From positions 171,583-235,582 of the forward strand of contig JBLDXI010000057.1 in NCBI GenBank assembly GCA_047495785.1: 64,000 nt of DNA. Reading direction: 5' to 3'. Position 1 is the stretch's first letter. Every line of letters begins with the position of its first letter. The position numbers and the translations under genes were made by a program. This DNA is from Lepidodermella squamata (taxonomy: Eukaryota > Animalia > Gastrotricha). Positions 31,122 to 63,216 of this stretch are shown here, one piece after another. Below the pieces are notes generated by a model, which saw only the letters and a program-made list of their open reading frames with translations, searched no databases and was not told the DNA's origin.

Positions 31122-31143
31122 TTATCAAGATTTATTTATACTT

Positions 31144-35931: not shown

Positions 35932-35953
35932 TTATCAAGATTTATTTATACTT

Positions 35954-36331: not shown

Positions 36332-36575
36332 GCAATCCCTTTCACTCTTTTGACGGTAATAAAAACGTTTTGCGTACCTGTCAATCCGTTGATTAGCACC
36401 AGTTGAGATTATTTCAAACAATTTCAATAATTTCCTAAGAAAGAGATTAAATATAATTGAATGTTTGAACATGAATAAGTGTTCTCAAGTCGAGGGTCAC
36501 TGTAGAACCATAAATCCAGGTTCAATCAAAGGAGACCTTGAATGAACCGGGATCATAAATGTAGAATTGAAAATG

Positions 36576-37130: not shown

Positions 37131-37177
37131 CGTTCCGTTTTTCAAAGGAGAAAAAGGAGAAAAAACCGTAACAATAC

Positions 37178-37319
37178 GCCACCCATGAAGGGGAGCAAAG
37201 AATCAAAGGCCACCCGTATAGGGGAGCGGAAGGAGGCACGCCACCCGTAAAGGGGAGCAACAAAGCAATAGCCACCCATGAAGGGGAGCAATAATTAAAA
37301 GCCACCCGTAAAGGGGAGC
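37178..37319 (-). repeat. Short-hairpin array (GCCACCC-N4-GGGGAGC type) x5, family B
   Basis: About 31-nt periodicity; copy in B2 at +6173. Confidence 0.85.
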
Positions 37320-39269: not shown

Positions 39270-39448
39270 CTAAAATTAACTCACGAGTAAAGTGTTTGGG
39301 GAAATGATATGTTGCTGTTTCAATTTATTTACAACCAAAACTTAGGTCACGAGTCATAGTCAAAAGTGTCAATTATCACTTGTATTGTCTTGGAATCCGT
39401 TTGTTGTTGTTGTAGTTGTTGTAGATTAGCCTGTAAACGAACTTATAA

Positions 39449-42341
39449 TTAACCTATAAATTCAGACTTAGTGTATCTTTTTCTGTTGTTTTTGTTTAGT
39501 TTCAGAGCCAGTCGTCCTTTCTGACGAATTAGCGCGTAAGCAGGTTCCAGTGTTTTTACGTATGTTACTACGTTCACCGTTTCATACTTCTGCTTTTTGC
39601 TTTTGGCTTTGATAAATGGCCAAGGGGTGCCTTTCAGTTTCCTCAAGGTATTTTTGATTGTGCTAATTATGAGTGCCCAGGGGTAATCCCTTTTGAGGAG
39701 GCTGTAGCAGAGGGAAAGAGTGGCCGTGGCCCAATCTTCGAAGTTTGAGCAGATTCTGCTATATCGGAGAATTTGGGACTCAATGATGCCTGAAAAAATG
39801 TGGTCAGGGTGCTCCGAGCCATGACATAGAAGTGCCATGTTATCGGTCGGTTTAAAGTAAACCCCTGTTTCGATTTTACCATTTTTCTTATACAGAAAAA
39901 TGTCCAAGTATTGAGCAGACTTATCTGAGATATTCACCTCAAGTTTAATGTTTGGGTGAAGGGTCTTATAGTCCTCCAAGAAGGCTGATGAGCGGTGATT
40001 GTCGAGGAAGATAGTAATTAGATCATCGAGGTATCTACACCCCAGTGGTGGGGAGTAAATTACCCAAAGGTTTCTTTCCTTTATGAAAAGCCAATTGTTA
40101 GCCACCCAGGGGGATAGGTGACCCCCCATAGCTAGTCCTTGTATTTGACGATACCATTTATTGTTGAACTTCACCGTGCTAGAGCTAAGGACGAGGAATA
40201 TAGCTCGGCAGACGAGCCGTCTCTCGTCGTATTCGAGGACTTCAAATTCCCTAAGGTAGGCCGCGATTCCATCTACAGCCTCGTGGAGGGGAATTTGGTT
40301 GTACATGTCGGTAATGTCCGCTGTGGTGATGACTGCATTTCGCAAGTCCTTTCCACTAGCGTTCAAATCCCTGATCTTTTGTAGGACCTCCACGCTACTA
40401 TGTACAACCGTGGTGAGGGTGTGCCTAGCTTGCCGGAGATTCCTGTAGAGGGTTTTATCGGCTTGCGAAGTATAGGTGTTGGTGCCATCGGTAATTGGGC
40501 GGACTTTGAGTAAATTTTCGTTGTCTGGGGGCTTGTGTAATTTTGGTAAGAAGTAGATGTATTTTGTGCGTATCCTGTCTATCTTTTTGAAAAGGCCTTT
40601 CCAGTTTTTCAAAGTATTTGGTGATAGGATGACCCAAGATGATCTTAGCCTGTGTAGGGCGTTTCTGTATTCCGCTAAGCCATCATCGTTGACTTCGCGA
40701 AAAGTTTGGGCATTCTGGAGAAATTTTTCCCCCATGCGACAGTAGGTTATTTTGTTGATTGCAATGACTACATTTCCCTTGTCGCTTTTCGTTACCCAGG
40801 TTCCCTCGGGGACTGTAAGTTCCTCGTTGTCAACTTTAGATAATTCACGCTCAAAAGAATAGAATAGATCACGGCGGGATTTTCGAGTCAAGTTGATTTT
40901 CAATTCCACAAATTTCTTTTCAACATCAAGTAACGTTTTTCTCATGTCTTTCCTATTGACTTTTACGAATTGGAGTCCTTTGGAGAGGGCTTCCTTGAGA
41001 TTGGTTGGCAGTTTCTCTGTTAGATCTATAACCCCTCGTTTTTCCCATTTTTTATTCTCTGCAGAAAGCGAAAGGGCTGGTTGAGAGGAAGTATGAATTG
41101 GTAGCCTATTGGAGAGTGAACTCTCTGATCCAAAAATAGATGATGAAAGGCCCGGGAGATCTTCAAGTATAAGCAGATCCTGGAGGTGACAGTCTATCAG
41201 ATGCCTCCAAAGTTTCCTTTTATTAGTTATATTGGTTGAATGTTCGTTACAGGTGGTGGTAATTATTCCATTGTTCTCAGAGGATGAGATACTACGATTC
41301 GGGTGACCCGGTTCGAATTTAGATGTAAAGAACCATAAAGAGGGTTTGGAAAATAGTGCGTTGATGAGAGTTTTGGTGTTGCATGTTTCTCCAAAAAGGT
41401 TTTCCTCGTGTAGAGTTTCCCAAGTGATTGGTTTGATAATATTAGGAACAGAAATTCTCCTACCTGAACTGACTGTAATGCCAGGGGCAGTCAGGGGTGC
41501 AGTCGGTGTTCCGCCAGTACTGAGCTCAACAGACAACTTTTCATCAATCAAGTGAAGAATGGTTTGAAAGCGTGCGGGTGGATCCGATGGCAGCGTCGTC
41601 CAATCTTGAGCAAGCATTGCCTTTGCGGCACGGCAAATTGCAGCTGCATCCAAGGTTTTGCCTTGTGTTTGCGGTGCGGTGATTAGAGGGAACGGTTTCC
41701 AGTTGAGAAGTATATCGGTTTGAAATGTGAGACTTGAACGATCTGCGGAGCGCCATGAAGACAGTATGGCATCATCGATTGAGCCACGGATGGAGGTCGA
41801 CGCTGATTCATAAATCGGCTTCAAGTCCAGCCACTTTTCAGCAGTGGAAGCCATGGACGCGACGATTTTCAAGCGTTCCTGTTCCGCCACGGCACGAATA
41901 GACACTTCAATTGTATCGTTCACCAGTCCTGGCCACTTTATGAACGCGTGGCACATCATGGCCTCCGCAAGCTAAGGATAAGACAGAATATTAGGTTATT
42001 TTCGATATTAAGGGGGTTAAGTGACTTACTTGTCGAACCACTGTGTTACCGGGGCTGAGGCCCGCAGACTTGGCTTTGTACCCGGCCATCATATTAAAGG
42101 TGGTGATGGCCATTGGCCAAAACGAGTTCAGGACATTAAGTGCTTGTTCGATAAGATCACCACCAGTGCGATTTGACGGTTGCCAGGAACTAAAAGCGGC
42201 ATGGAGAACGTTGGCGACGTCGTTGTTTTGGTCGACCCTAGGTTCATCTGCTTTGTTTCCCCCGTTATGAAATCGTTTAACGGGACCGCCGCGACCGTGA
42301 CCATTGTTGTTCCGATTACGATGGTTATTTGGCATACTCAT
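39449..42341 (-). CDS. Family B RT polyprotein (944 aa after removing intron 41972-42029), no endonuclease
   Basis: YFLPKLHKP, VRPITDG, TADITDMYNQIP, QIQGLAMGG, RYLDDL, GVYFKPTDN..SEHP. The spliced junction VVRQ/LAEAMMC aligns with uninterrupted family C AVRDIAKIVC. Confidence 0.93.
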
Positions 42342-43593
42342 TTCTAGGAAGAGAATGTAAAATATTAGGATGGCTTAGAGGTGTGTGATGAGGGACCGTC
42401 TCAGAGTTAGGGGATCGCCGTACTCACGACACGAGCCAGTGTTAGGGTTGGGTTAGGTTAATTACCAGACGGGAAGCCTAAGCAACCCCGGCATAGAAGC
42501 TCTAGCAATCCCTTTCACTCTTTTGACGGTAATAAAAACGTTTTGCGTACCTGTCAATCCGTTGATTAGCACCAGTTGAGATTATTTCAAACAATTTCAA
42601 TAATTTCCTAAGAAAGAGATTAAATATAATTGAATGTTTGAACATGAATAAGTGTTCTCAAGTCGAGGGTCACTGTAGAACCATAAATCCAGGTTCAATC
42701 AAAGGAGACCTTGAATGAACCGGGATCATAAATGTAGAATTGAAAATGTGGTAGAACCATGTCTTAAGGTTAAACCAGAAGGAAGAAGAAGACCTTGGTT
42801 GAACCAAAACCATAAAGTTGAGGTTGCAAATACGGGTAGAACCATAACTTAAGGTTGAACCGAAAAGGAAACCTTAATTGAACCAAAACTATGAAGTTGA
42901 GGTTGCAGATATGGGTAGAACCGTAATTTTAAGGTTAAACCGAAAAGGAAACCTTAACTGAACCAGAACTATATAGTTAAGGTTGCAAATATGGGTAGAA
43001 CCATAACTTAAGGTTAAACCGAGAAGGAAACCTTAATTGAACCAAAACTATATAGTTAAGGTTGCAAATATGGGTAGAACCATAACTTAAGGTTAAACCG
43101 AGAAGGAAACCTTAATTGAACCAAAACCATAAAGTTGAGGTTGTAAATATGGGTAAAACCATAATTTAAGGTTAAACCGAAAAGGAAACCTTAAACTGAA
43201 CCAGAACTATAAAGTTGAGGTTGCAAATATGGGTAGAACCATAACTTAAGGTTAAACCGAGAAGGAAACCTTAATTGAACCAAAACTGTGAAGTTAAGGT
43301 TACCGTTCCGTTTTTCAAAGGAGAAAAAGGAGAAAAAACCGTAACAATACGCCACCCATGAAGGGGAGCAAAGAATCAAAGGCCACCCGTATAGGGGAGC
43401 GGAAGGAGGCACGCCACCCGTAAAGGGGAGCAACAAAGCAATAGCCACCCATGAAGGGGAGCAATAATTAAAAGCCACCCGTAAAGGGGAGCATACGGAG
43501 AAAGAGCTCAACGTAAAGGTGAGCAAACTGGAAACAACGCCCAGCCGGGTTACCAGACAGTATTGGTGAGAACAGGAGGTCAAAAGCACGCAA

Positions 43594-45621: not shown

Positions 45622-47060
45622 TTAACCTATAAATTCAGACTTAGTGTATCTTTTTCTGTTGTTTTTGTTTAGTTTCAGAGCCAGTCGTCCTTTCTGACGA
45701 ATTAGCGCGTAAGCAGGTTCCAGTGTTTTTACGTATGTTACTACGTTCACCGTTTCATACTTCTGCTTTTTGCTTTTGGCTTTGATAAATGGCCAAGGGG
45801 TGCCTTTCAGTTTCCTCAAGGTATTTTTGATTGTGCTAATTATGAGTGCCCAGGGGTAATCCCTTTTGAGGAGGCTGTAGCAGAGGGAAAGAGTGGCCGT
45901 GGCCCAATCTTCGAAGTTTGAGCAGATTCTGCTATATCGGAGAATTTGGGACTCAATGATGCCTGAAAAAATGTGGTCAGGGTGCTCCGAGCCATGACAT
46001 AGAAGTGCCATGTTATCGGTCGGTTTAAAGTAAACCCCTGTTTCGATTTTACCATTTTTCTTATACAGAAAAATGTCCAAGTATTGAGCAGACTTATCTG
46101 AGATATTCACCTCAAGTTTAATGTTTGGGTGAAGGGTCTTATAGTCCTCCAAGAAGGCTGATGAGCGGTGATTGTCGAGGAAGATAGTAATTAGATCATC
46201 GAGGTATCTACACCCCAGTGGTGGGGAGTAAATTACCCAAAGGTTTCTTTCCTTTATGAAAAGCCAATTGTTAGCCACCCAGGGGGATAGGTGACCCCCC
46301 ATAGCTAGTCCTTGTATTTGACGATACCATTTATTGTTGAACTTCACCGTGCTAGAGCTAAGGACGAGGAATATAGCTCGGCAGACGAGCCGTCTCTCGT
46401 CGTATTCGAGGACTTCAAATTCCCTAAGGTAGGCCGCGATTCCATCTACAGCCTCGTGGAGGGGAATTTGGTTGTACATGTCGGTAATGTCCGCTGTGGT
46501 GATGACTGCATTTCGCAAGTCCTTTCCACTAGCGTTCAAATCCCTGATCTTTTGTAGGACCTCCACGCTACTATGTACAACCGTGGTGAGGGTGTGCCTA
46601 GCTTGCCGGAGATTCCTGTAGAGGGTTTTATCGGCTTGCGAAGTATAGGTGTTGGTGCCATCGGTAATTGGGCGGACTTTGAGTAAATTTTCGTTGTCTG
46701 GGGGCTTGTGTAATTTTGGTAAGAAGTAGATGTATTTTGTGCGTATCCTGTCTATCTTTTTGAAAAGGCCTTTCCAGTTTTTCAAAGTATTTGGTGATAG
46801 GATGACCCAAGATGATCTTAGCCTGTGTAGGGCGTTTCTGTATTCCGCTAAGCCATCATCGTTGACTTCGCGAAAAGTTTGGGCATTCTGGAGAAATTTT
46901 TCCCCCATGCGACAGTAGGTTATTTTGTTGATTGCAATGACTACATTTCCCTTGTCGCTTTTCGTTACCCAGGTTCCCTCGGGGACTGTAAGTTCCTCGT
47001 TGTCAACTTTAGATAATTCACGCTCAAAAGAATAGAATAGATCACGGCGGGATTTTCGAG
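45622..47060 (-). pseudogene. 5'-truncated family B RT (B2)
   Basis: Matches the C-terminal half of the B1 RT; broken at 47060 by telomeric repeats. Confidence 0.9.
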
Positions 47061-47092
47061 GGTTAGGGTTAGGGTTAGGGTTAGGGTTAGGG

Positions 47093-47133
<41 letters not shown>

Positions 47134-47182
47134 GGTTAGGGTTAGGGTTAGGGTTAGGGTTAGGGTTAGGGTTAGGTTAGGG
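47060..47182 (+). repeat. Telomeric tract capping B and priming C
   Basis: About 20 TTAGGG units. Confidence 0.97.
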
Positions 47183-47714
47183 AAAATACCAGACAGGTAG
47201 CCTAAGCAACCCCGGCAAAGAGGCTCTAATGCAGTTCAACCCGAATGAATTTTTTAAAAATAAACGTGAGCTTACCATGTTCGTTGCTTCTTCCGTGAGA
47301 GTAAAGGCCGATAATACCCAAAGATTTTAACAGAATCTAAAATACAGAAACATACAAATTGTTAGTTACAAGTTAAGGTTACCAGAACCTTAAATAATTT
47401 GCTTTTCAATAGATTGTCAACGTGGACACTAACCATAAGTGATTATAGGTATGTCTCGAAAAGGATAGGGTGTGAACCTTAAGTGGTTTACCCTATACCG
47501 GCTATTCCGTATTTAAACATCTCAAAGTTGAGGTCGAGGCCGAATAGGATTTATGGTTCGCAACCATATCCGGTTACATAGTTCAATCCGACCATAAGCA
47601 TATGAACCTTAACTTAGGTTAAGCTTTAGAGACTACTTCCTTAGTTCAGGGCTCTTGCTGAACCCTAAGTTATTTAGGGTCAGGATACCTTAAGTCAACC
47701 TGAGCAGCCCAGGT

Positions 47715-47948
47715 GCCACCCCAGTTGCGGGAAGCGTGTTTCCAAATGCCACCCATTAGAGGGAAGCCAACCGATTCTGCCACCCGTTGGAGGGAAGCTA
47801 CAAATATGATGCCACCCGTTAAAGGGAAGCCACGAATGTAATGCCACCCGTTGAAGGGAAGCCGAAAAGGTTACGCCACCCTCGTAAGGGAAGCCGACAA
47901 CAAAATGCCACCCATTAGAGGGAAGCTAAGCCACCCGTGGAGGGAAGC
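47715..47948 (-). repeat. Short-hairpin array (GCCACCC-N5/7-GGGAAGC) x8, family C
   Basis: About 32-nt periodicity; copy in C2 at +5889. Confidence 0.87.
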
Positions 47949-48017
47949 ACCCGATAAATTAGTTGCGGAGCGGTATGCGGTGTAATAACCTAATGTAATA
48001 CGAGAGATAGTAAGCAA

Positions 48018-48070
48018 CGCCCATAGTGCCAGACCGGTTTCGCCTGTGGGCGGCAGGCTCGTCAGTGACT
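48018..48070 (-). ncRNA. Hammerhead ribozyme (C1)
   Basis: GUCA-CUGACGA-GCCUG(CCGCCCA)CAGGC-GAAA-CCGG-UC/UGGC..UGGGCG. Confidence 0.92.
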
Positions 48071-48124
48071 CTAGTTGCTTAAAACAAAATCCGCTCAAAT
48101 GATGAAAATGTTCGAAAATAAGGC

Positions 48125-48190
48125 TTTTTATACTGCGGTCCCTTCCGCCATTTTGGAAAAAATCGTGGCACGTGGGTTTTGGCGCGAAAA
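48125..48190 (-). promoter_or_regulatory. Putative promoter (E2F-like, E-box, YY1-like, TATA), C1
   Basis: On the - strand: TTTTCGCGCCAAA, CACGTG, AAAATGGCGG, TATAAAAA. Confidence 0.62.
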
Positions 48191-48804
48191 TTTTTCTAGA
48201 AACTGATGTTATTTCCATAACCCAGTGCTAGTGGTTAGCTTATTTCCAACGGTTGAAACGTTTTGGAATTTATTAGCCGCAGGTGATTTCAAGGTCGTTT
48301 AGCCGCAGGTGATAGACTTAGAGTTAAGGTTTCATACTTATGGTTCGAGTTAAGGTTTCATACTTATGGTTCGCCTAGTCTTAGTGTTGGCGGTCTTCTG
48401 ACCACAAGTTAAATAACCGGCCGAATAGTCGTTTTAGGGTTGTCCTCGATAAGATAAGGTTCTTTTCAGTTCCGCTATTTGTTCAAGTCCCAAAACCTTA
48501 AGTTCTGGTTTCACACCGTAAGGTGGATTTAAGGTTACAGATATTCGTTAGTTTATTTCCACCTTCCTGAAGTGGATTTAAGGTTAGGGTCCTGTAGTTC
48601 GATTTCAATTTCCACGTTGATTCAGGTTGCCCAACCTTAAGTTGTTACTTAAGGTTACGGTTTCTGATTATCTTCGGACCCATTTGTTTCTGTTTCATTC
48701 TGCCTGGAGTTAAGGTTCACACGGTTGTAAAAGTCGTGAATTAGTTCAACAATGTGTTTTATTTCAGAAACTTCATCACTCACACTCACTTGACACAAAT
48801 CACC

Positions 48805-49982
48805 TCAAAAGTCACCCTTCTTCAGGATCTCAGCGCGGAGACGAAGACGTTCTTCATCCAGTGCTTGGGCCTGGACTAGCTGGTCTTTCTCGTGGTTCTT
48901 CAAGAAGTGTCCAAGTAGACCGTCCGACCTAGTGCAAGTGAACTTGCAGGATCCAATTCGGCAGAGGATGATCGATCCAGGCTTTTTGCCCGGGACCCGG
49001 GGAGCTTGCTCCACCCGTTCCCAGACAAGGGCGCCCTCGTAGTTCTCGCGCAGTTTTTCCCATGCAAGACTTTCGGCGACAGATCTAGCGGAACCTCCCG
49101 CAAGTCTCCGACCAGAAGTCGTGGGTCCACGGGCTGGAGTGCTGGCGATAGAGAATGAACAACCACCGGTCGATGACGACGAGCGTTCTGTGACAAGGTA
49201 AAGTTGAAGTTAAGGTTGCAATCTCCTTTAAAGAAATATCTTACCTTCCAAAGACGGAAGTGGTCGCTTGCGATTCGCCCTGTTGACTGTAGGCTCCGAT
49301 GTCGAAGCCATGGACACATTGTAGCGGGGTGCTGGCGATGAGGCTGCCGAACTCGTGGCGCTGCTGAATTCCAGTGGGGTTGAGGTTGCGCCTCCTCTCA
49401 GAGGTCGTCCGAACATATCGATATCTATGAAAAGATCGCGATCGAGGCGGACAACACAATCCTTAGTCGACAATCTCGGGTCTGGAGTTCCCAGGGTCGC
49501 ATCCGGCTGAAGTGTTGATTCCGAGGATGAGCTTTCACTATCTGAGCGTGAAAGCGCATCACGTGTCTCTTCGGGCAGCTCGTCCGCTGACATTTCAATA
49601 GCATCCTCGGTAGCCGATCTCACCGGAGAATCGGTTATCACGATGACGCCGCCCTGCTCCCGTTCCGGTGCTGCGTTGCTGGTAGCGGTTCCACCGTTAT
49701 CCTGGTCAGGCTTGGGATCTGCGTTGACTTGCTCGGTATCGTCGTCCAGCAGGTCAAGGGCTTCCTGGAGGGTAGCCGAGTCCGCGGCAGAGAAGCTACC
49801 CAAGCCGCTGAAAGTAGAAGCGCAAATTTCGGGACCATTGCTCGTCGATGGCAGCTCGAGCCTGTGACCAATGGTGACGGGCGAGGGGCACGGAGCCCTC
49901 CAGGCCGACTCAGGAGCCCAGCGACCGGTATCGTAGGTTGTCCCGAAGTTGAAGAATCTCCAACTCGGTGAAGCCGTGTCAG
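48805..49982 (-). CDS. Family C downstream exons (49245-49982, 48805-49187): disordered region plus C2H2 zinc finger
   Basis: Intron 49188-49244 (GTAAGA..CAG) restores the frame; GGSAR and the zinc finger CRIGSC-x12-HFLKNH align with family B; begins at a polypyrimidine TTTCCAG acceptor. Confidence 0.82.
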
Positions 49983-50151
49983 CTGGAAATGTTGTTATAG
50001 GGTTACGGGTATAAAGAAAAGGGTAAAAAGGCAAGTAAATTTGCACCAACTGTTTTATTTCTCACAAATGTTAGTATCATGGTGGATCATCGTCAAATGT
50101 CATTGTTCAGGGCCATAGTTGCGTTGAATGATGTCTTGTGTTGTTGTTTCT

Positions 50152-52986
50152 TTAGCTCTGACCTAGAAATTCAGATTTAGTGAAACGTTTACGATTATTT
50201 TTATTAAGACGAAGGGCCATTTTTCCTTTCCTTCGGATCAGGCTGTATGCGGGTTGAAGTGCTTTAGCATAGTGTAAAACGTGCATTGTCTCGTAATTTT
50301 TCTTTTTCTGCCGGTTGTTGTTGATAAAGGGCCACGTCTTTCCCTCCAATTTTGACAAAGTGCTTTTTGTGACTTTTGAGAGTAGAGTCCAAGAGTACCC
50401 CCGTTTAACCAAGCTGTTGAAAAGGGAGAGCGTTGCATACGCCCAGTCTGAGAACGTTGAGGCAATTCTGCTGAAGCGTAGAATTTGGGATTCAATGACA
50501 CCACTGAAAATGTGCTCTGGGTGCTCTGATCCATAACTGAGCAAGGCGAGGTTATCAGTAGGTTTGAAGTAGACGCCCGTCTCTAGCCTACCCTGTTTTT
50601 TATAGATAACCATATCCAAGTATTGGCCACTAGTCTGGGAAGAGGACACTTCAAGTTTGATATTTGGGTGCAGTTTTTTGTAATCTTCTTCAAAAGATGA
50701 TGATCTTTGGTTGCTGAGAAAAATCGTGAGGAGGTCATCGAGGTAACGGCAACCGAGGGGTGGTGAATAGATAAGCCAGAGTTTTCTTTCCAAGATGAAT
50801 AACCAGTTATTAGCCACCCATGGGGAGAGATGGCCCCCCATTGCCAACCCTTGGATCTGTTGGTACCATTTGTTGTTAAATTTCACCCTGCTGGAGCATA
50901 GTACGAGGTAAATAGCTTTGCATACTAATCTTCGTTCTTCAGGCTCGAAAACTTCATATTCCCGCAGATAAATTGCCACACCGTCCACCGCCTCCTTTAG
51001 GGGTATCTGGTTGTACATATCGCTGATGTCAGCAGTCATGATGACCGCTTCATCCAAGTTCCGACCACTTTCATTCAGTTCCCTGATTTTCTGTAAGACC
51101 TCTGTGCTGCTATGCACAACAGTTGTGAGGGTATGCCTAGCCCTGCGCAGTTTTTTGTAGAGTGTTTTGTCGGCTTGGGAGGTGTAGGTATTAGTACCAT
51201 CTGTGATGGGTCGAACCTTAAGTAGCCCTTCCTCGTCCGGGGCCTTATGGAGTTTCGGGAGAAAGTAAATAAATTTCGAGCGAAGTTTTTGTTGTCTTAC
51301 AAAGATCCCTTTCCATTTCCTCAGTGTGCCAGGGGAAATTTGTAGCCATGATGATTTTAATTGAGACAAAGCCTCTCGATATCCCGCGAAGCCGTCATCC
51401 TCAACAACTCGAAAATTAGTTGCGTTGTTCAAAAATTTTTCACCCATACGACAATAGGTGCTCTTGTCTAGAGCTAAAGTGACGTTACCTTTGTCACTTT
51501 TAGTGATCCAAACGTTCGGTCCTAGTTCTGGGGTTTTATTCTCAAGGCGCGTCATTTCTATGGCGGTCCCGGCGTGTAATTCCCTTCGGGATCTCCTGCT
51601 CAGCTGAATGCCCAGTTCCTTAAATTTTTCCTCCACTTCCTGGAGGGATTTTTGAAGATCTTTTTTGGTCAGTTTGACAAATTGAAATCCCTTCGCTAGG
51701 GTTGCCTTAACCTCTTCAGATAAACTATTAGTAAGGTCAACAACACCTTTTTTCTCCCAGATCTTGTTTTCCTCGGAAAGATTGAGGGCTGGTTGCCTAG
51801 AGCTGTGAATCGGTAGGTTACCCGGGACGATACAGTTTTCACCGTACAAGGATTTAGTGAATGAAGGGAAATCCTCCATGACGAAGAGGTCGTATATGTG
51901 GCAATCTACAAGGTGTTTCCATAACTTCCCGGGTGCAGAGAAAGTGGAGCGGTGTTTACTACAAGAGACAGTGAACCCGTCTGAATTTTCTGAAGTCAGG
52001 CAATTGCTGGGGTGCCCCGGTTCCCAACGGGCTGAGAAATGCCACACCGAGGGTTCCGTGAAAAGCTGTTTTATAACAACTCCAACCCTACACAAAGTTT
52101 TATTACCCATCAAGTTATCCAAGTATCCCCAAGTAATGTCCTTGATTCCGCTAGGAGTAAAAACAATTTTCCTACCTGAGGCTCCAGAGGCTCCTGCCTG
52201 TGGAGCAGTCGGCAGCCCGCCATTGGTGAGCTCCAAGCCCAGTTTTTCATCAACCAGATGTACCAATGTGCGCAATCTGACTGCTTTGTCGCCTCCAACT
52301 CCATTCCAATCATGGGCAATGACGGCCTGCGTTGCACGGCAGATCCCGGACTTGTCGAGCGTTTTACCAGCATTGCGGGGTGCGGCAATGAGAGGGAACG
52401 GCTGCCAAGTCACTGTGAAGTCCGCGCTGATACCAAGCCCTTCTTTATCGGCGGCCCTGTAAGTCGCCGCGAGAGCGTCATCCAGCGCTGCCTTGACCGG
52501 AGGTGTCGCAGACTCGTAGATCTCCTTGAGACTTAACCATTTCTCAGCTGCTCTGGCGAGGTTAACCGTAATTTTTAATCGTAGCTTCTCTCCCACCAGT
52601 TTCAGCGACAGGTCGACCGCCTCATTGGCCAGTGGTTCGTAATCCAAGATGTCGTTGTCGCAAACGATCTTCGCGATGTCGCGAACTGCCGGGTCAGACA
52701 GAGGAGATAGACTCAAAACTTTGGTCTTGTAGCCATCCATTTCCTTGAACACGCGGAACGTTTGACGCCAAAAATCATTGAATAGTTGCGTAGCGCGTTC
52801 AGTCGAGTCGCCGCCGGTTCGGTTCGTCGGGTTGAAGGCCGATAGAAAGGCCGTAAAGCGATCATTCGAACTCGAGGACCGCCCATCATCCGAGCGACGA
52901 TCGCCGTGCTGACCATCGAAACGCTTCCGATTGTACTTGCCGTTGCCGTTACCGTTGCCGAATCGATTGTTGTGGTTACCAGGCAT
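50152..52986 (-). CDS. Family C RT polyprotein (944 aa), no endonuclease
   Basis: Intact ORF with YFLPKLHK, TADISDMYNQIP, GLAMGG, RYLDDL, GVYFKPTDN..SEHP. Confidence 0.95.
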   Translation of the reverse strand: MPGNHNNRFGNGNGNGKYNRKRFDGQHGDRRSDDGRSSSSNDRFTAFLSAFNPTNRTGGDSTERATQLFNDFWRQTFRVFKEMDGYKTKVLSLSPLSDPAVRDIAKIVCDNDILDYEPLANEAVDLSLKLVGEKLRLKITVNLARAAEKWLSLKEIYESATPPVKAALDDALAATYRAADKEGLGISADFTVTWQPFPLIAAPRNAGKTLDKSGICRATQAVIAHDWNGVGGDKAVRLRTLVHLVDEKLGLELTNGGLPTAPQAGASGASGRKIVFTPSGIKDITWGYLDNLMGNKTLCRVGVVIKQLFTEPSVWHFSARWEPGHPSNCLTSENSDGFTVSCSKHRSTFSAPGKLWKHLVDCHIYDLFVMEDFPSFTKSLYGENCIVPGNLPIHSSRQPALNLSEENKIWEKKGVVDLTNSLSEEVKATLAKGFQFVKLTKKDLQKSLQEVEEKFKELGIQLSRRSRRELHAGTAIEMTRLENKTPELGPNVWITKSDKGNVTLALDKSTYCRMGEKFLNNATNFRVVEDDGFAGYREALSQLKSSWLQISPGTLRKWKGIFVRQQKLRSKFIYFLPKLHKAPDEEGLLKVRPITDGTNTYTSQADKTLYKKLRRARHTLTTVVHSSTEVLQKIRELNESGRNLDEAVIMTADISDMYNQIPLKEAVDGVAIYLREYEVFEPEERRLVCKAIYLVLCSSRVKFNNKWYQQIQGLAMGGHLSPWVANNWLFILERKLWLIYSPPLGCRYLDDLLTIFLSNQRSSSFEEDYKKLHPNIKLEVSSSQTSGQYLDMVIYKKQGRLETGVYFKPTDNLALLSYGSEHPEHIFSGVIESQILRFSRIASTFSDWAYATLSLFNSLVKRGYSWTLLSKVTKSTLSKLEGKTWPFINNNRQKKKNYETMHVLHYAKALQPAYSLIRRKGKMALRLNKNNRKRFTKSEFLGQS

Positions 52987-53906
52987 CTAAGAGAATATTA
53001 AACAAATTCATTAGTGAGCTGAACTAACATCGCACGTACGGCACAAGCAAATTGTTAGGGTTAGTTTAGGGAAAATACCAGACAGGTAGCCTAAGCAACC
53101 CCGGCAAAGAGGCTCTAATGCAGTTCAACCCGAATGAATTTTTTAAAAATAAACGTGAGCTTACCATGTTCGTTGCTTCTTCCGTGAGAGTAAAGGCCGA
53201 TAATACCCAAAGATTTTAACAGAATCTAAAATACAGAAACATACAAATTGTTAGTTACAAGTTAAGGTTACCAGAACCTTAAATAATTTGCTTTTCAATA
53301 GATTGTCAACGTGGACACTAACCATAAGTGATTATAGGTATGTCTCGAAAAGGATAGGGTGTGAACCTTAAGTGGTTTACCCTATACCGGCTATTCCGTA
53401 TTTAAACATCTCAAAGTTGAGGTCGAGGCCGAATAGGATTTATGGTTCGCAACCATATCCGGTTACATAGTTCAATCCGACCATAAGCATATGAACCTTA
53501 ACTTAGGTTAAGCTTTAGAGACTACTTCCTTAGTTCAGGGCTCTTGCTGAACCCTAAGTTATTTAGGGTCAGGATACCTTAAGTCAACCTGAGCAGCCCA
53601 GGTGCCACCCCAGTTGCGGGAAGCGTGTTTCCAAATGCCACCCATTAGAGGGAAGCCAACCGATTCTGCCACCCGTTGGAGGGAAGCTACAAATATGATG
53701 CCACCCGTTAAAGGGAAGCCACGAATGTAATGCCACCCGTTGAAGGGAAGCCGAAAAGGTTACGCCACCCTCGTAAGGGAAGCCGACAACAAAATGCCAC
53801 CCATTAGAGGGAAGCTAAGCCACCCGTGGAGGGAAGCACCCGATAAATTAGTTGCGGAGCGGTATGCGGTGTAATAACCTAATGTAATACGAGAGATAGT
53901 AAGCAA

Positions 53907-53959
53907 CGCCCATAGTGCCAGACCGGTTTCGCCTGTGGGCGGCAGGCTCGTCAGTGACT
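53907..53959 (-). ncRNA. Hammerhead ribozyme (C2)
   Basis: Same sequence as in C1. Confidence 0.92.
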
Positions 53960-54693
53960 CTAGTTGCTTAAAACAAAATCCGCTCAAATGATGAAAATGT
54001 TCGAAAATAAGGCTTTTTATACTGCGGTCCCTTCCGCCATTTTGGAAAAAATCGTGGCACGTGGGTTTTGGCGCGAAAATTTTTCTAGAAACTGATGTTA
54101 TTTCCATAACCCAGTGCTAGTGGTTAGCTTATTTCCAACGGTTGAAACGTTTTGGAATTTATTAGCCGCAGGTGATTTCAAGGTCGTTTAGCCGCAGGTG
54201 ATAGACTTAGAGTTAAGGTTTCATACTTATGGTTCGAGTTAAGGTTTCATACTTATGGTTCGCCTAGTCTTAGTGTTGGCGGTCTTCTGACCACAAGTTA
54301 AATAACCGGCCGAATAGTCGTTTTAGGGTTGTCCTCGATAAGATAAGGTTCTTTTCAGTTCCGCTATTTGTTCAAGTCCCAAAACCTTAAGTTCTGGTTT
54401 CACACCGTAAGGTGGATTTAAGGTTACAGATATTCGTTAGTTTATTTCCACCTTCCTGAAGTGGATTTAAGGTTAGGGTCCTGTAGTTCGATTTCAATTT
54501 CCACGTTGATTCAGGTTGCCCAACCTTAAGTTGTTACTTAAGGTTACGGTTTCTGATTATCTTCGGACCCATTTGTTTCTGTTTCATTCTGCCTGGAGTT
54601 AAGGTTCACACGGTTGTAAAAGTCGTGAATTAGTTCAACAATGTGTTTTATTTCAGAAACTTCATCACTCACACTCACTTGACACAAATCACC

Positions 54694-55871
54694 TCAAAAG
54701 TCACCCTTCTTCAGGATCTCAGCGCGGAGACGAAGACGTTCTTCATCCAGTGCTTGGGCCTGGACTAGCTGGTCTTTCTCGTGGTTCTTCAAGAAGTGTC
54801 CAAGTAGACCGTCCGACCTAGTGCAAGTGAACTTGCAGGATCCAATTCGGCAGAGGATGATCGATCCAGGCTTTTTGCCCGGGACCCGGGGAGCTTGCTC
54901 CACCCGTTCCCAGACAAGGGCGCCCTCGTAGTTCTCGCGCAGTTTTTCCCATGCAAGACTTTCGGCGACAGATCTAGCGGAACCTCCCGCAAGTCTCCGA
55001 CCAGAAGTCGTGGGTCCACGGGCTGGAGTGCTGGCGATAGAGAATGAACAACCACCGGTCGATGACGACGAGCGTTCTGTGACAAGGTAAAGTTGAAGTT
55101 AAGGTTGCAATCTCCTTTAAAGAAATATCTTACCTTCCAAAGACGGAAGTGGTCGCTTGCGATTCGCCCTGTTGACTGTAGGCTCCGATGTCGAAGCCAT
55201 GGACACATTGTAGCGGGGTGCTGGCGATGAGGCTGCCGAACTCGTGGCGCTGCTGAATTCCAGTGGGGTTGAGGTTGCGCCTCCTCTCAGAGGTCGTCCG
55301 AACATATCGATATCTATGAAAAGATCGCGATCGAGGCGGACAACACAATCCTTAGTCGACAATCTCGGGTCTGGAGTTCCCAGGGTCGCATCCGGCTGAA
55401 GTGTTGATTCCGAGGATGAGCTTTCACTATCTGAGCGTGAAAGCGCATCACGTGTCTCTTCGGGCAGCTCGTCCGCTGACATTTCAATAGCATCCTCGGT
55501 AGCCGATCTCACCGGAGAATCGGTTATCACGATGACGCCGCCCTGCTCCCGTTCCGGTGCTGCGTTGCTGGTAGCGGTTCCACCGTTATCCTGGTCAGGC
55601 TTGGGATCTGCGTTGACTTGCTCGGTATCGTCGTCCAGCAGGTCAAGGGCTTCCTGGAGGGTAGCCGAGTCCGCGGCAGAGAAGCTACCCAAGCCGCTGA
55701 AAGTAGAAGCGCAAATTTCGGGACCATTGCTCGTCGATGGCAGCTCGAGCCTGTGACCAATGGTGACGGGCGAGGGGCACGGAGCCCTCCAGGCCGACTC
55801 AGGAGCCCAGCGACCGGTATCGTAGGTTGTCCCGAAGTTGAAGAATCTCCAACTCGGTGAAGCCGTGTCAG
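54694..55871 (-). CDS. Family C downstream ZnF exons, copy in C2
   Basis: Duplicate of 48805-49982 at +5889. Confidence 0.75.
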
Positions 55872-56040
55872 CTGGAAATGTTGTTATAGGGTTACGGGTA
55901 TAAAGAAAAGGGTAAAAAGGCAAGTAAATTTGCACCAACTGTTTTATTTCTCACAAATGTTAGTATCATGGTGGATCATCGTCAAATGTCATTGTTCAGG
56001 GCCATAGTTGCGTTGAATGATGTCTTGTGTTGTTGTTTCT

Positions 56041-58718
56041 TTAGCTCTGACCTAGAAATTCAGATTTAGTGAAACGTTTACGATTATTTTTATTAAGACG
56101 AAGGGCCATTTTTCCTTTCCTTCGGATCAGGCTGTATGCGGGTTGAAGTGCTTTAGCATAGTGTAAAACGTGCATTGTCTCGTAATTTTTCTTTTTCTGC
56201 CGGTTGTTGTTGATAAAGGGCCACGTCTTTCCCTCCAATTTTGACAAAGTGCTTTTTGTGACTTTTGAGAGTAGAGTCCAAGAGTACCCCCGTTTAACCA
56301 AGCTGTTGAAAAGGGAGAGCGTTGCATACGCCCAGTCTGAGAACGTTGAGGCAATTCTGCTGAAGCGTAGAATTTGGGATTCAATGACACCACTGAAAAT
56401 GTGCTCTGGGTGCTCTGATCCATAACTGAGCAAGGCGAGGTTATCAGTAGGTTTGAAGTAGACGCCCGTCTCTAGCCTACCCTGTTTTTTATAGATAACC
56501 ATATCCAAGTATTGGCCACTAGTCTGGGAAGAGGACACTTCAAGTTTGATATTTGGGTGCAGTTTTTTGTAATCTTCTTCAAAAGATGATGATCTTTGGT
56601 TGCTGAGAAAAATCGTGAGGAGGTCATCGAGGTAACGGCAACCGAGGGGTGGTGAATAGATAAGCCAGAGTTTTCTTTCCAAGATGAATAACCAGTTATT
56701 AGCCACCCATGGGGAGAGATGGCCCCCCATTGCCAACCCTTGGATCTGTTGGTACCATTTGTTGTTAAATTTCACCCTGCTGGAGCATAGTACGAGGTAA
56801 ATAGCTTTGCATACTAATCTTCGTTCTTCAGGCTCGAAAACTTCATATTCCCGCAGATAAATTGCCACACCGTCCACCGCCTCCTTTAGGGGTATCTGGT
56901 TGTACATATCGCTGATGTCAGCAGTCATGATGACCGCTTCATCCAAGTTCCGACCACTTTCATTCAGTTCCCTGATTTTCTGTAAGACCTCTGTGCTGCT
57001 ATGCACAACAGTTGTGAGGGTATGCCTAGCCCTGCGCAGTTTTTTGTAGAGTGTTTTGTCGGCTTGGGAGGTGTAGGTATTAGTACCATCTGTGATGGGT
57101 CGAACCTTAAGTAGCCCTTCCTCGTCCGGGGCCTTATGGAGTTTCGGGAGAAAGTAAATAAATTTCGAGCGAAGTTTTTGTTGTCTTACAAAGATCCCTT
57201 TCCATTTCCTCAGTGTGCCAGGGGAAATTTGTAGCCATGATGATTTTAATTGAGACAAAGCCTCTCGATATCCCGCGAAGCCGTCATCCTCAACAACTCG
57301 AAAATTAGTTGCGTTGTTCAAAAATTTTTCACCCATACGACAATAGGTGCTCTTGTCTAGAGCTAAAGTGACGTTACCTTTGTCACTTTTAGTGATCCAA
57401 ACGTTCGGTCCTAGTTCTGGGGTTTTATTCTCAAGGCGCGTCATTTCTATGGCGGTCCCGGCGTGTAATTCCCTTCGGGATCTCCTGCTCAGCTGAATGC
57501 CCAGTTCCTTAAATTTTTCCTCCACTTCCTGGAGGGATTTTTGAAGATCTTTTTTGGTCAGTTTGACAAATTGAAATCCCTTCGCTAGGGTTGCCTTAAC
57601 CTCTTCAGATAAACTATTAGTAAGGTCAACAACACCTTTTTTCTCCCAGATCTTGTTTTCCTCGGAAAGATTGAGGGCTGGTTGCCTAGAGCTGTGAATC
57701 GGTAGGTTACCCGGGACGATACAGTTTTCACCGTACAAGGATTTAGTGAATGAAGGGAAATCCTCCATGACGAAGAGGTCGTATATGTGGCAATCTACAA
57801 GGTGTTTCCATAACTTCCCGGGTGCAGAGAAAGTGGAGCGGTGTTTACTACAAGAGACAGTGAACCCGTCTGAATTTTCTGAAGTCAGGCAATTGCTGGG
57901 GTGCCCCGGTTCCCAACGGGCTGAGAAATGCCACACCGAGGGTTCCGTGAAAAGCTGTTTTATAACAACTCCAACCCTACACAAAGTTTTATTACCCATC
58001 AAGTTATCCAAGTATCCCCAAGTAATGTCCTTGATTCCGCTAGGAGTAAAAACAATTTTCCTACCTGAGGCTCCAGAGGCTCCTGCCTGTGGAGCAGTCG
58101 GCAGCCCGCCATTGGTGAGCTCCAAGCCCAGTTTTTCATCAACCAGATGTACCAATGTGCGCAATCTGACTGCTTTGTCGCCTCCAACTCCATTCCAATC
58201 ATGGGCAATGACGGCCTGCGTTGCACGGCAGATCCCGGACTTGTCGAGCGTTTTACCAGCATTGCGGGGTGCGGCAATGAGAGGGAACGGCTGCCAAGTC
58301 ACTGTGAAGTCCGCGCTGATACCAAGCCCTTCTTTATCGGCGGCCCTGTAAGTCGCCGCGAGAGCGTCATCCAGCGCTGCCTTGACCGGAGGTGTCGCAG
58401 ACTCGTAGATCTCCTTGAGACTTAACCATTTCTCAGCTGCTCTGGCGAGGTTAACCGTAATTTTTAATCGTAGCTTCTCTCCCACCAGTTTCAGCGACAG
58501 GTCGACCGCCTCATTGGCCAGTGGTTCGTAATCCAAGATGTCGTTGTCGCAAACGATCTTCGCGATGTCGCGAACTGCCGGGTCAGACAGAGGAGATAGA
58601 CTCAAAACTTTGGTCTTGTAGCCATCCATTTCCTTGAACACGCGGAACGTTTGACGCCAAAAATCATTGAATAGTTGCGTAGCGCGTTCAGTCGAGTCGC
58701 CGCCGGTTCGGTTCGTCG
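56041..58718 (-). pseudogene. Family C RT ORF in C2 lacking its first ~52 codons
   Basis: Matches C1 up to 58718, where the inversion junction removes the ATG. Confidence 0.85.
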
Positions 58719-58721: not shown

Positions 58722-60390
58722 ACGAGCTGCCCGAAGAGACACGTGATGCGCTTTCACGCTCAGATAGTGAAAGCTCATCCTCGGAATCAACACTTCAGCC
58801 GGATGCGACCCTGGGAACTCCAGACCCGAGATTGTCGACTAAGGATTGTGTTGTCCGCCTCGATCGCGATCTTTTCATAGATATCGATATGTTCGGACGA
58901 CCTCTGAGAGGAGGCGCAACCTCAACCCCACTGGAATTCAGCAGCGCCACGAGTTCGGCAGCCTCATCGCCAGCACCCCGCTACAATGTGTCCATGGCTT
59001 CGACATCGGAGCCTACAGTCAACAGGGCGAATCGCAAGCGACCACTTCCGTCTTTGGAAGGTAAGATATTTCTTTAAAGGAGATTGCAACCTTAACTTCA
59101 ACTTTACCTTGTCACAGAACGCTCGTCGTCATCGACCGGTGGTTGTTCATTCTCTATCGCCAGCACTCCAGCCCGTGGACCCACGACTTCTGGTCGGAGA
59201 CTTGCGGGAGGTTCCGCTAGATCTGTCGCCGAAAGTCTTGCATGGGAAAAACTGCGCGAGAACTACGAGGGCGCCCTTGTCTGGGAACGGGTGGAGCAAG
59301 CTCCCCGGGTCCCGGGCAAAAAGCCTGGATCGATCATCCTCTGCCGAATTGGATCCTGCAAGTTCACTTGCACTAGGTCGGACGGTCTACTTGGACACTT
59401 CTTGAAGAACCACGAGAAAGACCAGCTAGTCCAGGCCCAAGCACTGGATGAAGAACGTCTTCGTCTCCGCGCTGAGATCCTGAAGAAGGGTGACTTTTGA
59501 GGTGATTTGTGTCAAGTGAGTGTGAGTGATGAAGTTTCTGAAATAAAACACATTGTTGAACTAATTCACGACTTTTACAACCGTGTGAACCTTAACTCCA
59601 GGCAGAATGAAACAGAAACAAATGGGTCCGAAGATAATCAGAAACCGTAACCTTAAGTAACAACTTAAGGTTGGGCAACCTGAATCAACGTGGAAATTGA
59701 AATCGAACTACAGGACCCTAACCTTAAATCCACTTCAGGAAGGTGGAAATAAACTAACGAATATCTGTAACCTTAAATCCACCTTACGGTGTGAAACCAG
59801 AACTTAAGGTTTTGGGACTTGAACAAATAGCGGAACTGAAAAGAACCTTATCTTATCGAGGACAACCCTAAAACGACTATTCGGCCGGTTATTTAACTTG
59901 TGGTCAGAAGACCGCCAACACTAAGACTAGGCGAACCATAAGTATGAAACCTTAACTCGAACCATAAGTATGAAACCTTAACTCTAAGTCTATCACCTGC
60001 GGCTAAACGACCTTGAAATCACCTGCGGCTAATAAATTCCAAAACGTTTCAACCGTTGGAAATAAGCTAACCACTAGCACTGGGTTATGGAAATAACATC
60101 AGTTTCTAGAAAAATTTTCGCGCCAAAACCCACGTGCCACGATTTTTTCCAAAATGGCGGAAGGGACCGCAGTATAAAAAGCCTTATTTTCGAACATTTT
60201 CATCATTTGAGCGGATTTTGTTTTAAGCAACTAGAGTCACTGACGAGCCTGCCGCCCACAGGCGAAACCGGTCTGGCACTATGGGCGTTGCTTACTATCT
60301 CTCGTATTACATTAGGTTATTACACCGCATACCGCTCCGCAACTAATTTATCGGGTGCTTCCCTCCACGGGTGGCTTAGCTTCCCTCTAA
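58722..60390 (+). mobile_element. Inverted fragment of family C (reverse complement of about 47915-49583)
   Basis: The same ORFs appear on the opposite strand; includes the ZnF exon, promoter block and hammerhead; capped by telomeric repeats. Confidence 0.93.
60235..60287 (+). ncRNA. Hammerhead ribozyme in the inverted C fragment
   Basis: AGTCACTGACGAGCCTGCCGCCCACAGGCGAAACCGGTCTGGCACTATGGGCG. Confidence 0.92.
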
Positions 60391-60582
60391 GGGTTTGGGT
60401 TAGAGTTAGGGTTAGGGTTGGGTTAGGGTTAGGGTTAGGGTTAGGGTTAGGGTTAGGGTTAGGGTTAGGGTTAGGGTTAGGGTTAGGGTTAGGGTTAGGG
60501 TTAGGGTTAGGGTTAGGGTTAGGGTTAGGGTTAGGGTTAGGGTTAGGGTTAGGGTTAGGGTTAGGGTTAGGGTTAGGGTTAG
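60391..60582 (+). repeat. Telomeric tract (about 32 units, first few variant)
   Basis: GGGTTTGGGTTAGAGTTAGGG... followed by regular TTAGGG. Confidence 0.97.
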
Positions 60583-61129
60583 TTTAGGGAAAATACCAGA
60601 CAGGTAGCCTAAGCAACCCCGGCAAGGAGGCTCTAGTGCAGCCCAGCTCAAATAAAATACCGTAATCCTTGATCGAGGCTTAGAGGAGGTTCAGTATTGG
60701 TTGAACTGTGGTATCAACAGTTCCGTAGAGTAGACAAGGGTCTTTCAATGTATGTAAACAGATCATCTCCAGGTTGAGGTTCCCGAACCCTAAGTGGTTC
60801 AAGCTCAGACAAAAATGGCGTGTGCACCATAACTCAGTCAGAGGAACGCCTGTTCAGGATCAGCGCTCCTTTCGTTGGGAAATCGTCACCCGAGAGCACG
60901 CCAGGAAGAGCGACACCCGAACCTTAAGTAACCCTGTAGCATTTCACAGATTACTCCCGGTCCATCCTGCAACCTAAGCCAAGGATGACATTCCAGAAGC
61001 TCAAGTTATTCCAAAAGGTGAACCCTAACTGATGTTGGGCTCGATTTGTGATCTCCCTGTGTCTGAGATCACGATGACCCCCAAGTTATTTAGGGTTGGA
61101 AGGCTTGAAGTCATCCTGCAAGCTGAGAT

Positions 61130-61276
61130 GCCACCCTAGTAGCGGGAAGCGTAATTCCAGATGCCACCCATTGGAGGGAAGCCAACAACGCAATGCCACC
61201 CATTAGAGGGAAGCCAATATCACAATGCCACCCTTGCGGGAAGCCTTTTTCGCCTTGCCACCCGTAAAGGGAAGCA
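61130..61276 (-). repeat. Short-hairpin array x5, family D
   Basis: GCCACCC-N4/7-GGGAAGC; copy at +1793. Confidence 0.85.
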
Positions 61277-61370
61277 CTTGGTAATGTGGTGGAAAAGAGC
61301 AGTACTCGACAATTGCGATTGTCGCATATTCCTAGGAAAAGTAGGAAATAAAGTTATTGATGTCAAGCAA

Positions 61371-61423
61371 CGCCCATAGTGTCAGACCGGTTTCGCCTGT
61401 GGGCAGCAGGCTCATCAGTGACT
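61371..61423 (-). ncRNA. Hammerhead ribozyme (D1)
   Basis: GUCA-CUGAUGA-GCCUG(CUGCCCA)CAGGC-GAAA-CCGG-UC/UGAC..UGGGCG. Confidence 0.93.
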
Positions 61424-61478
61424 CTAGTTGCTTAGACCAAAATCCGCTCGAATGAAGAAAACGCTCCGAAATACGGCC

Positions 61479-61539
61479 TTATATACCGCGATCTCTTCCG
61501 CTATTACAACATACGTGCCACGTGGCTTTGGCGCGAAAA
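61479..61539 (-). promoter_or_regulatory. Putative promoter (E2F-like, E-box, TATA), D1
   Basis: On the - strand: TTTTCGCGCCAAA, CACGTG, TATATAA. Confidence 0.58.
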
Positions 61540-63163: not shown

Positions 63164-63216
63164 CGCCCATAGTGTCAGACCGGTTTCGCCTGTGGGCAGC
63201 AGGCTCATCAGTGACT
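63164..63216 (-). ncRNA. Hammerhead ribozyme (D2)
   Basis: Same sequence as in D1. Confidence 0.93.

Follow-up and report, generated by a model that had tools for sequence, protein, structure and literature searches.

How a retroelement can express a zinc-finger (ZnF) coding region that has no start codon of its own is the question raised by a stretch of 64,000 nucleotides (nt) from the gastrotrich Lepidodermella squamata (GenBank assembly GCA_047495785.1, contig JBLDXI010000057.1, positions 171,583 to 235,582 of the forward strand), hereafter the window. The window contains an array of retroelements, one of which, here called family C, encodes a reverse transcriptase (RT) followed on the same strand by two exons that end in a C2H2 finger and have no initiating ATG. 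By its motifs, its telomeric behaviour and a putative hammerhead, family C is classed as an endonuclease-free Penelope-like element (PLE) adding itself to TTAGGG chromosome ends. Our analysis suggests that a choice between splicing and polyadenylation gives this element two proteins with one N-terminus, which we consider somewhat probable. The splice reading was assessed by comparing family C with family B of the same window, with four fetched relatives (L001, L002, L003 and L004) and with a decayed copy (L007). All coordinates of the family C and B elements are window positions on the minus strand, and a slash in a splice-site sequence marks the exon-intron boundary.

Read without splicing, family C has a 944-amino-acid (aa) open reading frame (ORF) from 52986 to 50152, as the initial annotation had claimed. 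ORF reading, Pfam and motifs divide it into an N-terminal domain (N-domain), an RT-proximal CCHH finger (52002-51898), the RT core and the thumb. The motif DKG is found at 51498-51484 (SDKGN, residues 497-501), RYLDD in the RT core at 50748-50734 (residues 747-751), and YFKPTD is also present, with the ORF ending about 130 aa past it. Pfam gives a weak RVT_1 match only on this ORF, and the closest relatives carry DUF8422, RVT_1 and HTH_animal; no GIY-YIG endonuclease was found by Pfam in this or any other ORF of the unit. With the RT ORF as query, an exhaustive search of proteins returned 9609 relatives, and the closest of them begin near residue 300 of the family C protein and are therefore without the N-domain. 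The exon encoding this domain (52176-52986, 270 codons plus 1 nt, by ORF and join translation) begins with a basic part rich in G, N and R, continues as a mostly helical body and closes with the motif L.HL[IV]DEKL, after which comes a Pro/Gly/Ser linker. The AlphaFold model of the N-domain is poor (pLDDT 45), and an Atlas search for look-alikes gave scores below 0.9 throughout. At the other end of the ORF, RT conservation stops in family C (50163-50161), family B (39454-39452) and L001 (~4276) with a Gly whose codon is GGT, and 0-6 variable tail codons come after it.

The two ZnF exons lie downstream of the RT stop. Exon 1 (49245-49982, 738 nt) is entered in phase 1 from the acceptor tttccag/ct, with the exon start at 49982. 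It is followed by a 57-nt intron (49188-49244, gaag/gtaaga...tcacag/aa), whose position is shared with family B, and by exon 2 with the stop (48805-49187; TGA at 48807-48805). It had been noted earlier that these exons lack an ATG and start at a phase-1 acceptor, and we found the same: their frame is shut 67 nt upstream of the acceptor by the TAA within an AATAAA, and the first in-frame Met comes 130 codons past the acceptor. The start of exon 1 is conserved as SW..F..G...RW....W..P.P..VTIG, of which the SW..F, RW and VTIG motifs are common to C, B and L004, and the remainder is acidic and Ser-rich and looks disordered by its composition. Since the exon start is conserved as protein, in-frame entry of ribosomes from an upstream exon is required. 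Frameshifting or readthrough from RT into ZnF is excluded because, apart from 12 nt in L003, the two frames have no overlap, and the proposal that frameshifting is not the device used here is borne out to that extent. Exon 2 carries one classical finger, C-x4-C-x12-H-x4-H, at 48963-48892 with a helical tail after it. In the finger alignment the residues C, C, G, H and H are invariant in six lineages; the finger profile matches fingers of WT1, KLF4/5 and TFIIIA with E values of 5e-4 to 1e-2, and Pfam zf-C2H2 matches two of the six finger members (E 0.003).

The candidate entry point is a phase-1 5' splice site inside the RT ORF, GTAGGA at 52170-52175 in the context cctCAG/GTAGGA (exon end 52176), with homologues in B, L001-L004 and L007. 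The initial annotation had located this donor at 52175, and it is indeed present on the minus strand. Joining 52986-52176, 49982-49245 and 49187-48805 gives, as claimed there, 1932 nt and 643 aa that end in the C2H2 finger, with no internal stop; the sequence across the predicted join of N-domain and ZnF reads ...GGAGCCTCAG/CTGACACGGC... The would-be intron of this short isoform (49983-52175, 2193 nt) contains RT codons 271-944, the RT stop and a first AATAAA. The open 643-aa frame is not significant alone because any phase-1 GT in the RT ORF yields one, and this ORF has 121 GT dinucleotides, 43 of them in phase 1. A match to MAG/GTRAGT at 7 or more of the 9 positions is found for two of the 121, the GT at 52175 among them. 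The donor is covered by a 10-nt block, TCAGGTAGGA, which C and B have in common within an otherwise diverged linker; the block does stand out, as we read it, by its position in that linker and not within a conserved motif.

Both poly(A) signals on which the earlier proposal relied were recovered. The first AATAAA (50054-50059) lies inside the 2193-nt stretch, between the RT stop (93 nt away) and the ZnF acceptor (71 nt away), and the second (48758-48763) is 42 nt past the ZnF stop. Each of the six intact lineages has an AATAAA at 15-71 nt before its ZnF acceptor, for which shuffled sequence gives a chance of 0.03-0.33 per lineage, and the decayed copy L007 has CATAAA at the equivalent place. 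Short motifs also recur between the RT stop and the AATAAA in otherwise unalignable sequence (C 50152-50060, B 39449-39330), i.e. TTGAC in C, B, L002 (3230-3290) and L004 (3575-3585), and GATACTAA or GACCTAA in C, L003 (2985-2995) and B. The TTGAC and GATACTAA motifs may be upstream elements of the poly(A) signal or a distant branch site.

The comparison across lineages carries most of the argument. In family B (38191-42341), whose RT is 56% identical to that of C, the ORF starts at ATG 42341, has an extra phase-0 intron of 58 nt (42029-41972) and reaches the RT stop at 39449. Its donor is TCAG/GTAGGA, again in phase 1, with the exon end at 41464; the RT stop is followed by an AATAAA and a phase-1 acceptor, TTTTAG/AT (exon start 39269), and the ZnF part has its intron at 38582-38529 and its stop at 38191. 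The same ZnF layout, an acidic and Ser-rich stretch with a C-terminal C-x4-C-x12-H-x4-H finger, recurs after the RT stop in L001-L004 and L007. The ZnF exon begins at a good phase-1 3' splice site and has no in-frame Met for 15-145 codons in all lineages, and the N-domain ends at a phase-1 donor in seven of seven, in the contexts TCAG/GT, TCTG/GT, CAAG/GT, CCAG/GT and TCAA/GT. Joining N-domain and ZnF gives open frames of 643 aa in C, 614 in B, 603 in L001, 541 in L002, 465 in L003 and 581 in L004, and the join is open in L007 too.

The use that the RT makes of this donor differs among the lineages. An in-frame stop follows the donor in L001, L003, L004 and L007. In L001, L003 and L004 an intron of 63-137 nt joins the N-domain to the RT exon, called from the frame as an interval whose removal is needed for an open reading, and the N-domain-RT and N-domain-ZnF joins are both open. 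The donor is thus obligatory in these three, since the in-frame stop follows it. For the decayed L007 we found no RT acceptor in the right phase, and the N-domain-ZnF join is still open. In C, B and L002 the RT frame runs through the donor, yet the donor is the top-scoring donor-like site of an ORF of 2.8-3 kb. In the RT tree the seven lineages with a ZnF form a single clade (support 100/99), which has the topology (L003,L007),(L002,L004),(L001,(C,B)) and RT identities of 30-56%. From this topology the read-through state arose twice, once in C and B and once in L002, with the donor kept. The only in-frame feeder of the ZnF exons that is present in every lineage is, by this comparison, the phase-1 donor that ends the N-domain. 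The earlier description of the RT as lying inside an intron therefore applies to the short isoform only; three relatives have their RT as an alternative terminal exon. The claim of two proteins with a shared N-terminus stands as a conserved anatomy in seven lineages, for which comparison is the evidence.

The sister clade, which includes family A of the window, L006, L008 and others, has no downstream ZnF. In family A (30060-36198, minus strand), L006 and L008, an ORF1 overlaps the RT in the +1 frame, which suggests a conserved +1 shift or a small intron, and this ORF1 consists of an N-domain, a Pro-rich linker and a CCHH finger. We considered the ORF1 of family A as a contiguous model of the spliced product of family C and rejected it: its finger is the RT-proximal finger of C, as the spacing C-x9-13-C...H-x4-H and the distance to V[IV]DLT match that finger and not the downstream C2H2. 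Directly behind its N-domain, at the place that corresponds to the C/B donor, family A has a telomere-complementary tract that translates in frame as NPTNPNP...

Several points weigh against the splice reading. The donor hexamer GTAGGA is weak, and the 2.2-kb intron would be about 40 times as long as the usual introns of this genome (50-62 nt). The agreement in phase amounts to about one event at a 1-in-3 chance because it is shared by descent. The TCAGGTAGGA block is not unique, as the alignment of C and B has 12 identical runs of at least 9 nt, and the Ser-Gly-Arg codons at the donor may be kept for protein reasons. The sole public run that contains the stretch is a DNA-like unitig set, and word searches of protein collections with the RT ORF and the L003 N-domain gave no spliced product. 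Taken furthest, these points would make the donor a mere conserved Ser-Gly-Arg coding motif and the ZnF exons a relic, or a region initiated non-canonically, so that the element would not make two proteins with a common N-terminus; the 10-nt identity belongs to a set of 12 such runs, and the splice reading was drawn from sequence alone. We regard this as very improbable, and the least probable of the alternatives, given that the ZnF ORF is intact, with C, C, H and H invariant, across seven lineages whose RTs are 30-56% identical, and that a homologous donor is needed for any RT in three of them. The layout of the poly(A) signals could also be that of an operon, with RT and ZnF as separate cistrons, the RT message polyadenylated at 50059-50054, a spliced leader added at 49983/49982 and translation started from the leader or from a later Met. 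An AATAAA 15-71 nt before the acceptor in six of six intact lineages is the classic intercistronic arrangement and counts against our reading, and the RT ORF itself is preceded by tag/ATG in C, B and L001. The ZnF exon, however, has no ATG for 15-145 codons past the acceptor, its phase-1 entry means that a leader would need an AUG plus 3n+1 nt, and the residues directly past the acceptor are conserved; in C and L003 the first AUG past the acceptor is out of frame and opens a wrong-frame ORF of about 80-90 codons. An operon is therefore unlikely in our judgement, though less so than the other alternatives.

Two further explanations would feed the ZnF exons from nearby sequence, and we think both of them improbable, to a similar degree and somewhat more so than the operon. 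Between the RT stop and the AATAAA there could be a very small first exon that belongs to the ZnF, whose protein would then be without the N-domain. What speaks for such an exon, and against the splice from the RT ORF, is that C has ATG...CATTT/GTGAGA (25 nt, phase 1, ~50090-50066, intron ~83 nt) and B has ATG...TTTTG/GTTGTA (22 nt, phase 1), that the GT sites at which these mini-ORFs end, both in phase 1, are aligned and that the intron length is typical for the genome. Such an exon is nevertheless impossible in L001, where a stop precedes any GT, and in L003 and L004, where the interval of 56-84 nt has no in-frame ATG. The donor GTTGTA of B is a poor one, and the start codon belongs to a TTGAC-containing motif that L004 has without an ATG. 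Nor would such an exon explain why C, B and L002 keep a donor where the N-domain ends. The other source is the end of the RT itself: if a GT in the last RT codons were spliced to the ZnF acceptor, the stop and the AATAAA would be lost and the ZnF exons would form a C-terminal extension in an RT-ZnF fusion of about 1300 aa. Phase-1 GTs that favour this over our reading are TAG/GTCAGA in C, TAG/GTTAAT in B and CAG/GTACCA in L001; the GGT codon at KSEF.G is retained in these three with variable tails after it, the intron would be a plausible 120-185 nt, and Zn-finger-like motifs are located downstream of RT in endonuclease-containing clades (PMC8557442). The fusion would recall the Zn-finger linker that follows RT in Neptune and Nematis elements. 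This source fails in L002, whose last 80 RT codons contain no GT in phase 1, and in L003 and L004, where a phase-1 GT is found only at least 23 codons inside the conserved thumb; the donors are weak, and the donor at the N-domain boundary is again not explained. The GT of the terminal GGT is in phase 1 and could donate to the ZnF acceptor, and an RT-ZnF fusion made in this way could coexist with the N-domain splice as a third isoform.

For the splice-or-polyadenylate choice we propose the following course. The pre-mRNA would probably start in the promoter and hammerhead module of the unit stacked upstream, and the stretch before the ATG would be removed at a tag/ATG acceptor, through cis-splicing of an intron or through addition of a spliced leader. 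If the weak donor at 52176/52175 is ignored, cleavage past the AATAAA at 50059-50054 would yield the 944-aa protein with N-domain, finger and RT. If 52176 is spliced to 49982, 2193 nt would be taken out, followed by the 57-nt intron, and the message would end past the AATAAA at 48763-48758 and encode the 643-aa protein, in which the 270-aa N-domain known from the RT protein would be followed by a low-complexity acidic stretch and, at the C-terminus, a single C2H2 finger. The switch would be of the composite terminal exon type, in which splicing competes with intronic polyadenylation, and would determine how much of an ORF1-like nucleic-acid-binding protein is made relative to RT. The common N-domain may let both proteins assemble on one RNA, and the finger may bind nucleic acid or telomeres. 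Neither route can have acted on the RNA copied onto telomeres, since the inserts keep all introns and extend 1.6 kb past the second signal. The introns kept in transposed copies are of 57 nt in both C copies and in B, and of 57-137 nt in L001, L003 and L004, and the intron retention of the C inserts fits that known for PLEs (PMC8557442). For the clade as a whole, the plan could be read as an N-domain/C2H2 gene with the RT as an alternative terminal exon, fused in frame to the upstream exon in some lineages, where a splice/poly(A) switch and not frameshifting sets the ratio of ORF1-like protein to RT and the genomic RNA escapes both routes; we see this wider statement as evenly balanced between true and false.

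The start of the pre-mRNA is suggested by the 3' part of each unit. In family C a promoter-like module (TTTCGCGCC, TATAAAA) and a putative minimal hammerhead core occupy 48009-48190, as read from the sequence. The core, CTGACGAG...CGAAAC, has a short palindromic helix III (48082-48009), and such a helix is typical of Penelope-like elements. The Rfam model Hammerhead_HH9 gives a weak match of 14.4 bits (E 0.35) on the C core, below threshold, with a blank scan at the gathering threshold, and the homologous hammerhead of L001 scores 20.4 bits (E 0.004). Since the module is in the 3' part of each unit, one unit's promoter would drive the unit stacked downstream, which is like the logic of promoting in tandem of Drosophila HeT-A. 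The TTTCGCGCC and TATAAA module, about 65 nt upstream of the hammerhead, is also found in B (37590-37420, minus strand), L004 (4540-4700) and L002 (4560-4588). The read depth of the DNA run triples over 47956-48152, and the module is therefore common to more copies or families.

Between this module and the RT ORF of the next unit we predicted a 5' intron, or a trans-splice outron, of 178 nt (52987-53164) that spans the junction of two stacked units. Its donor, ...acATG/gtaagc, is in the 3' end of the upstream copy about 110 nt before its end, and its acceptor, tcttag/, abuts the RT ATG. A like layout, with lengths of 178-207 nt, is found in B (42550-42344, donor gacag/gtacgc) and L001 (~1100-1260). 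The tag/ before the RT ATG could alternatively be a spliced-leader acceptor. We also tried joining the leader-exon donor ...ATG/GTAAGC directly to the ZnF acceptor, and rejected this join as out of frame. A GTG[CT]CG-rich motif comes right after the junction tract at the 5' ends of full-length units (C 53047-52990, B 42438-42345, L001 1146-1260) and may be a conserved 5'-end signal. The 3' regions hold internal tandem repeats, with units of 79-80 nt, aaccttaa / ggtt-rich, in B (36500-37210 and 42675-43380, minus strand), units of ~40 nt, gcttccct...gggtggc, in C (47980-47730, minus strand), and analogous ggcctctg...acacgcc repeats after the hammerhead in L001.

Self-BLAST resolved two stacked copies of family C. 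Copy C1 is a full unit of ~5.9 kb (47165-53047) in the order 5' untranslated region (UTR), N-domain/RT ORF, ZnF exons and a 3' region with the promoter-like module and hammerhead, and its 3' terminus reads ...ggtattttccctaa. Copy C2 (53054-58718) is 5'-truncated within the RT ORF; 47165-52829 and 53054-58718 are 99.98% identical, the same donor, acceptor and AATAAA recur in C2 at +5889, and the junction of C2 with C1 is an 18-nt telomere-like tract. A (CCCTAA)n telomeric tract of ~120 nt (47060-47180) separates the 3' end of C1 from a 5'-truncated family B element, of which an RT fragment is seen at 46908-45622. Telomeric attachment is visible in the ends themselves: C1 ends in ...ttccctaa plus (CCCTAA)n, family B does likewise, and L003 terminates in a CCCTAA-like tract. 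The site of the array is, from these features, a subtelomere. At 58718/58722 the 5' truncation of C2 adjoins an inverted partial C copy (58722-60394, plus strand, equal to 49583-47910), after which comes a second (CCCTAA)n tract (60400-60590). An inverted and 5'-truncated arrangement is typical of PLE insertion. Family D (60572-63989) was considered as a spliced, RT-less derivative and rejected, as it has no N-domain or ZnF ORFs.

Host genes are located beside the array, with Cys-loop receptor and P4-ATPase ORFs in the left 30 kb of the window according to Pfam, which mark the host as an animal. Three ORFs have Cys-loop receptor transmembrane regions (4714-5535, 15034-16029 and 21352-22305, minus strand), and the stretches 15575-15935 and 21869-22229 are 76% identical. 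The P4-type phospholipid flippase (P4-ATPase) ORF (7374-11075, minus strand) has introns of 50-62 nt with GTAAAT donors.

Searches for products covered DNA reads and metagenomes as well. Over 47365-53250 the DNA-like run contains no joint besides the tandem one, and therefore no processed DNA copies. A narrow RT alignment found no relative in the metagenomes, and the 22-mer from the donor exon of L004 gave only a chance match there, in a bacterial nuoE gene.

The general organization of family C agrees with that of the endonuclease-deficient PLEs, namely Athena of bdelloid rotifers, Coprina of fungi and others (PMC8557442, PMC13159263), in a comparison with their published descriptions. Like them, family C has an RT without GIY-YIG, reverse-complement telomeric repeats at its 3' end at chromosome ends, head-to-tail 5'-truncated stacks with ORFs toward the centromere, a candidate hammerhead motif, kept introns and an extended N-terminus. 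In Athena ORF1 is separated from RT by a frameshift, and Coprina has one ORF or a coil ORF1 plus RT (PMC8557442, PMC13159263). Family A and its kin fit this description. In the C/B clade, by contrast, N-domain and RT are fused, and the RT is followed by a C2H2 exon that has no start codon. No C2H2 exon of this kind, with an N-terminal exon in common with the RT, is described in the literature that we searched, which excluded the primary Athena/Coprina and Terminon papers. Introns are known from other PLEs: Penelope and Chlamys-3_cRei have a 5'-UTR intron across the boundary between the pseudo-long terminal repeat (pLTR) and the body, and alternative intron use has been reported for Chlamys-3_cRei (PMC8557442). 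As predicted for family C, the donor lies in the repeat unit upstream, the acceptor directly precedes the ORF and the repeated part contains an internal promoter. In contrast to the family C model, these introns are in the 5' UTR or N-terminal extension, the RT is not skipped and an endonuclease is present.

The closest parallels to the proposed switch come from outside the PLEs. Host genes such as those for IgM (mu-s/mu-m) and calcitonin/calcitonin gene-related peptide (CGRP) have alternative terminal exons with a shared N-terminus. The likeness to the C model, a composite terminal exon with a weak internal donor set against an intronic poly(A) site, is by analogy only, and these are host genes, unlike the mobile element C. 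The Drosophila copia element makes a 2-kb RNA by the Ty1/copia strategy. That strategy couples alternative splicing to premature termination, as in the shGAG RNA of Arabidopsis EVD (PMC5580714) and in BARE (PMC3735527). In common with the C model, one transcription unit serves both the enzyme, from a long mRNA, and the structural or ORF1-like protein, from a short one; a donor competes with a poly(A) site, and the RNA for retrotransposition has to stay unspliced. The direction of the choice differs, however: in copia the spliced RNA loses part of pol and the short RNA ends early, whereas in the C model the unspliced RNA ends early and encodes RT, and the spliced RNA skips RT and gains C-terminal zinc-finger exons. 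Family C is moreover a PLE with no long terminal repeat and no capsid, unlike copia, and the copia case is proven by RNA while the C case is inferred.

No class of retroelements is less understood than the PLEs, and none is more closely related to telomerase. The comparison defines a monophyletic clade and a testable set of junctions. If true, the model would be a variant of the Ty1/copia strategy of a spliced gag mRNA in a third retroelement class. If the splice is real, the problem of making much structural protein and little enzyme would have been solved by splicing and intronic polyadenylation, independently of Ty1/copia and retroviruses, and this would help explain why such elements keep their introns. 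The conserved C2H2 protein would then be a candidate telomere- or RNA-targeting partner of the RT.

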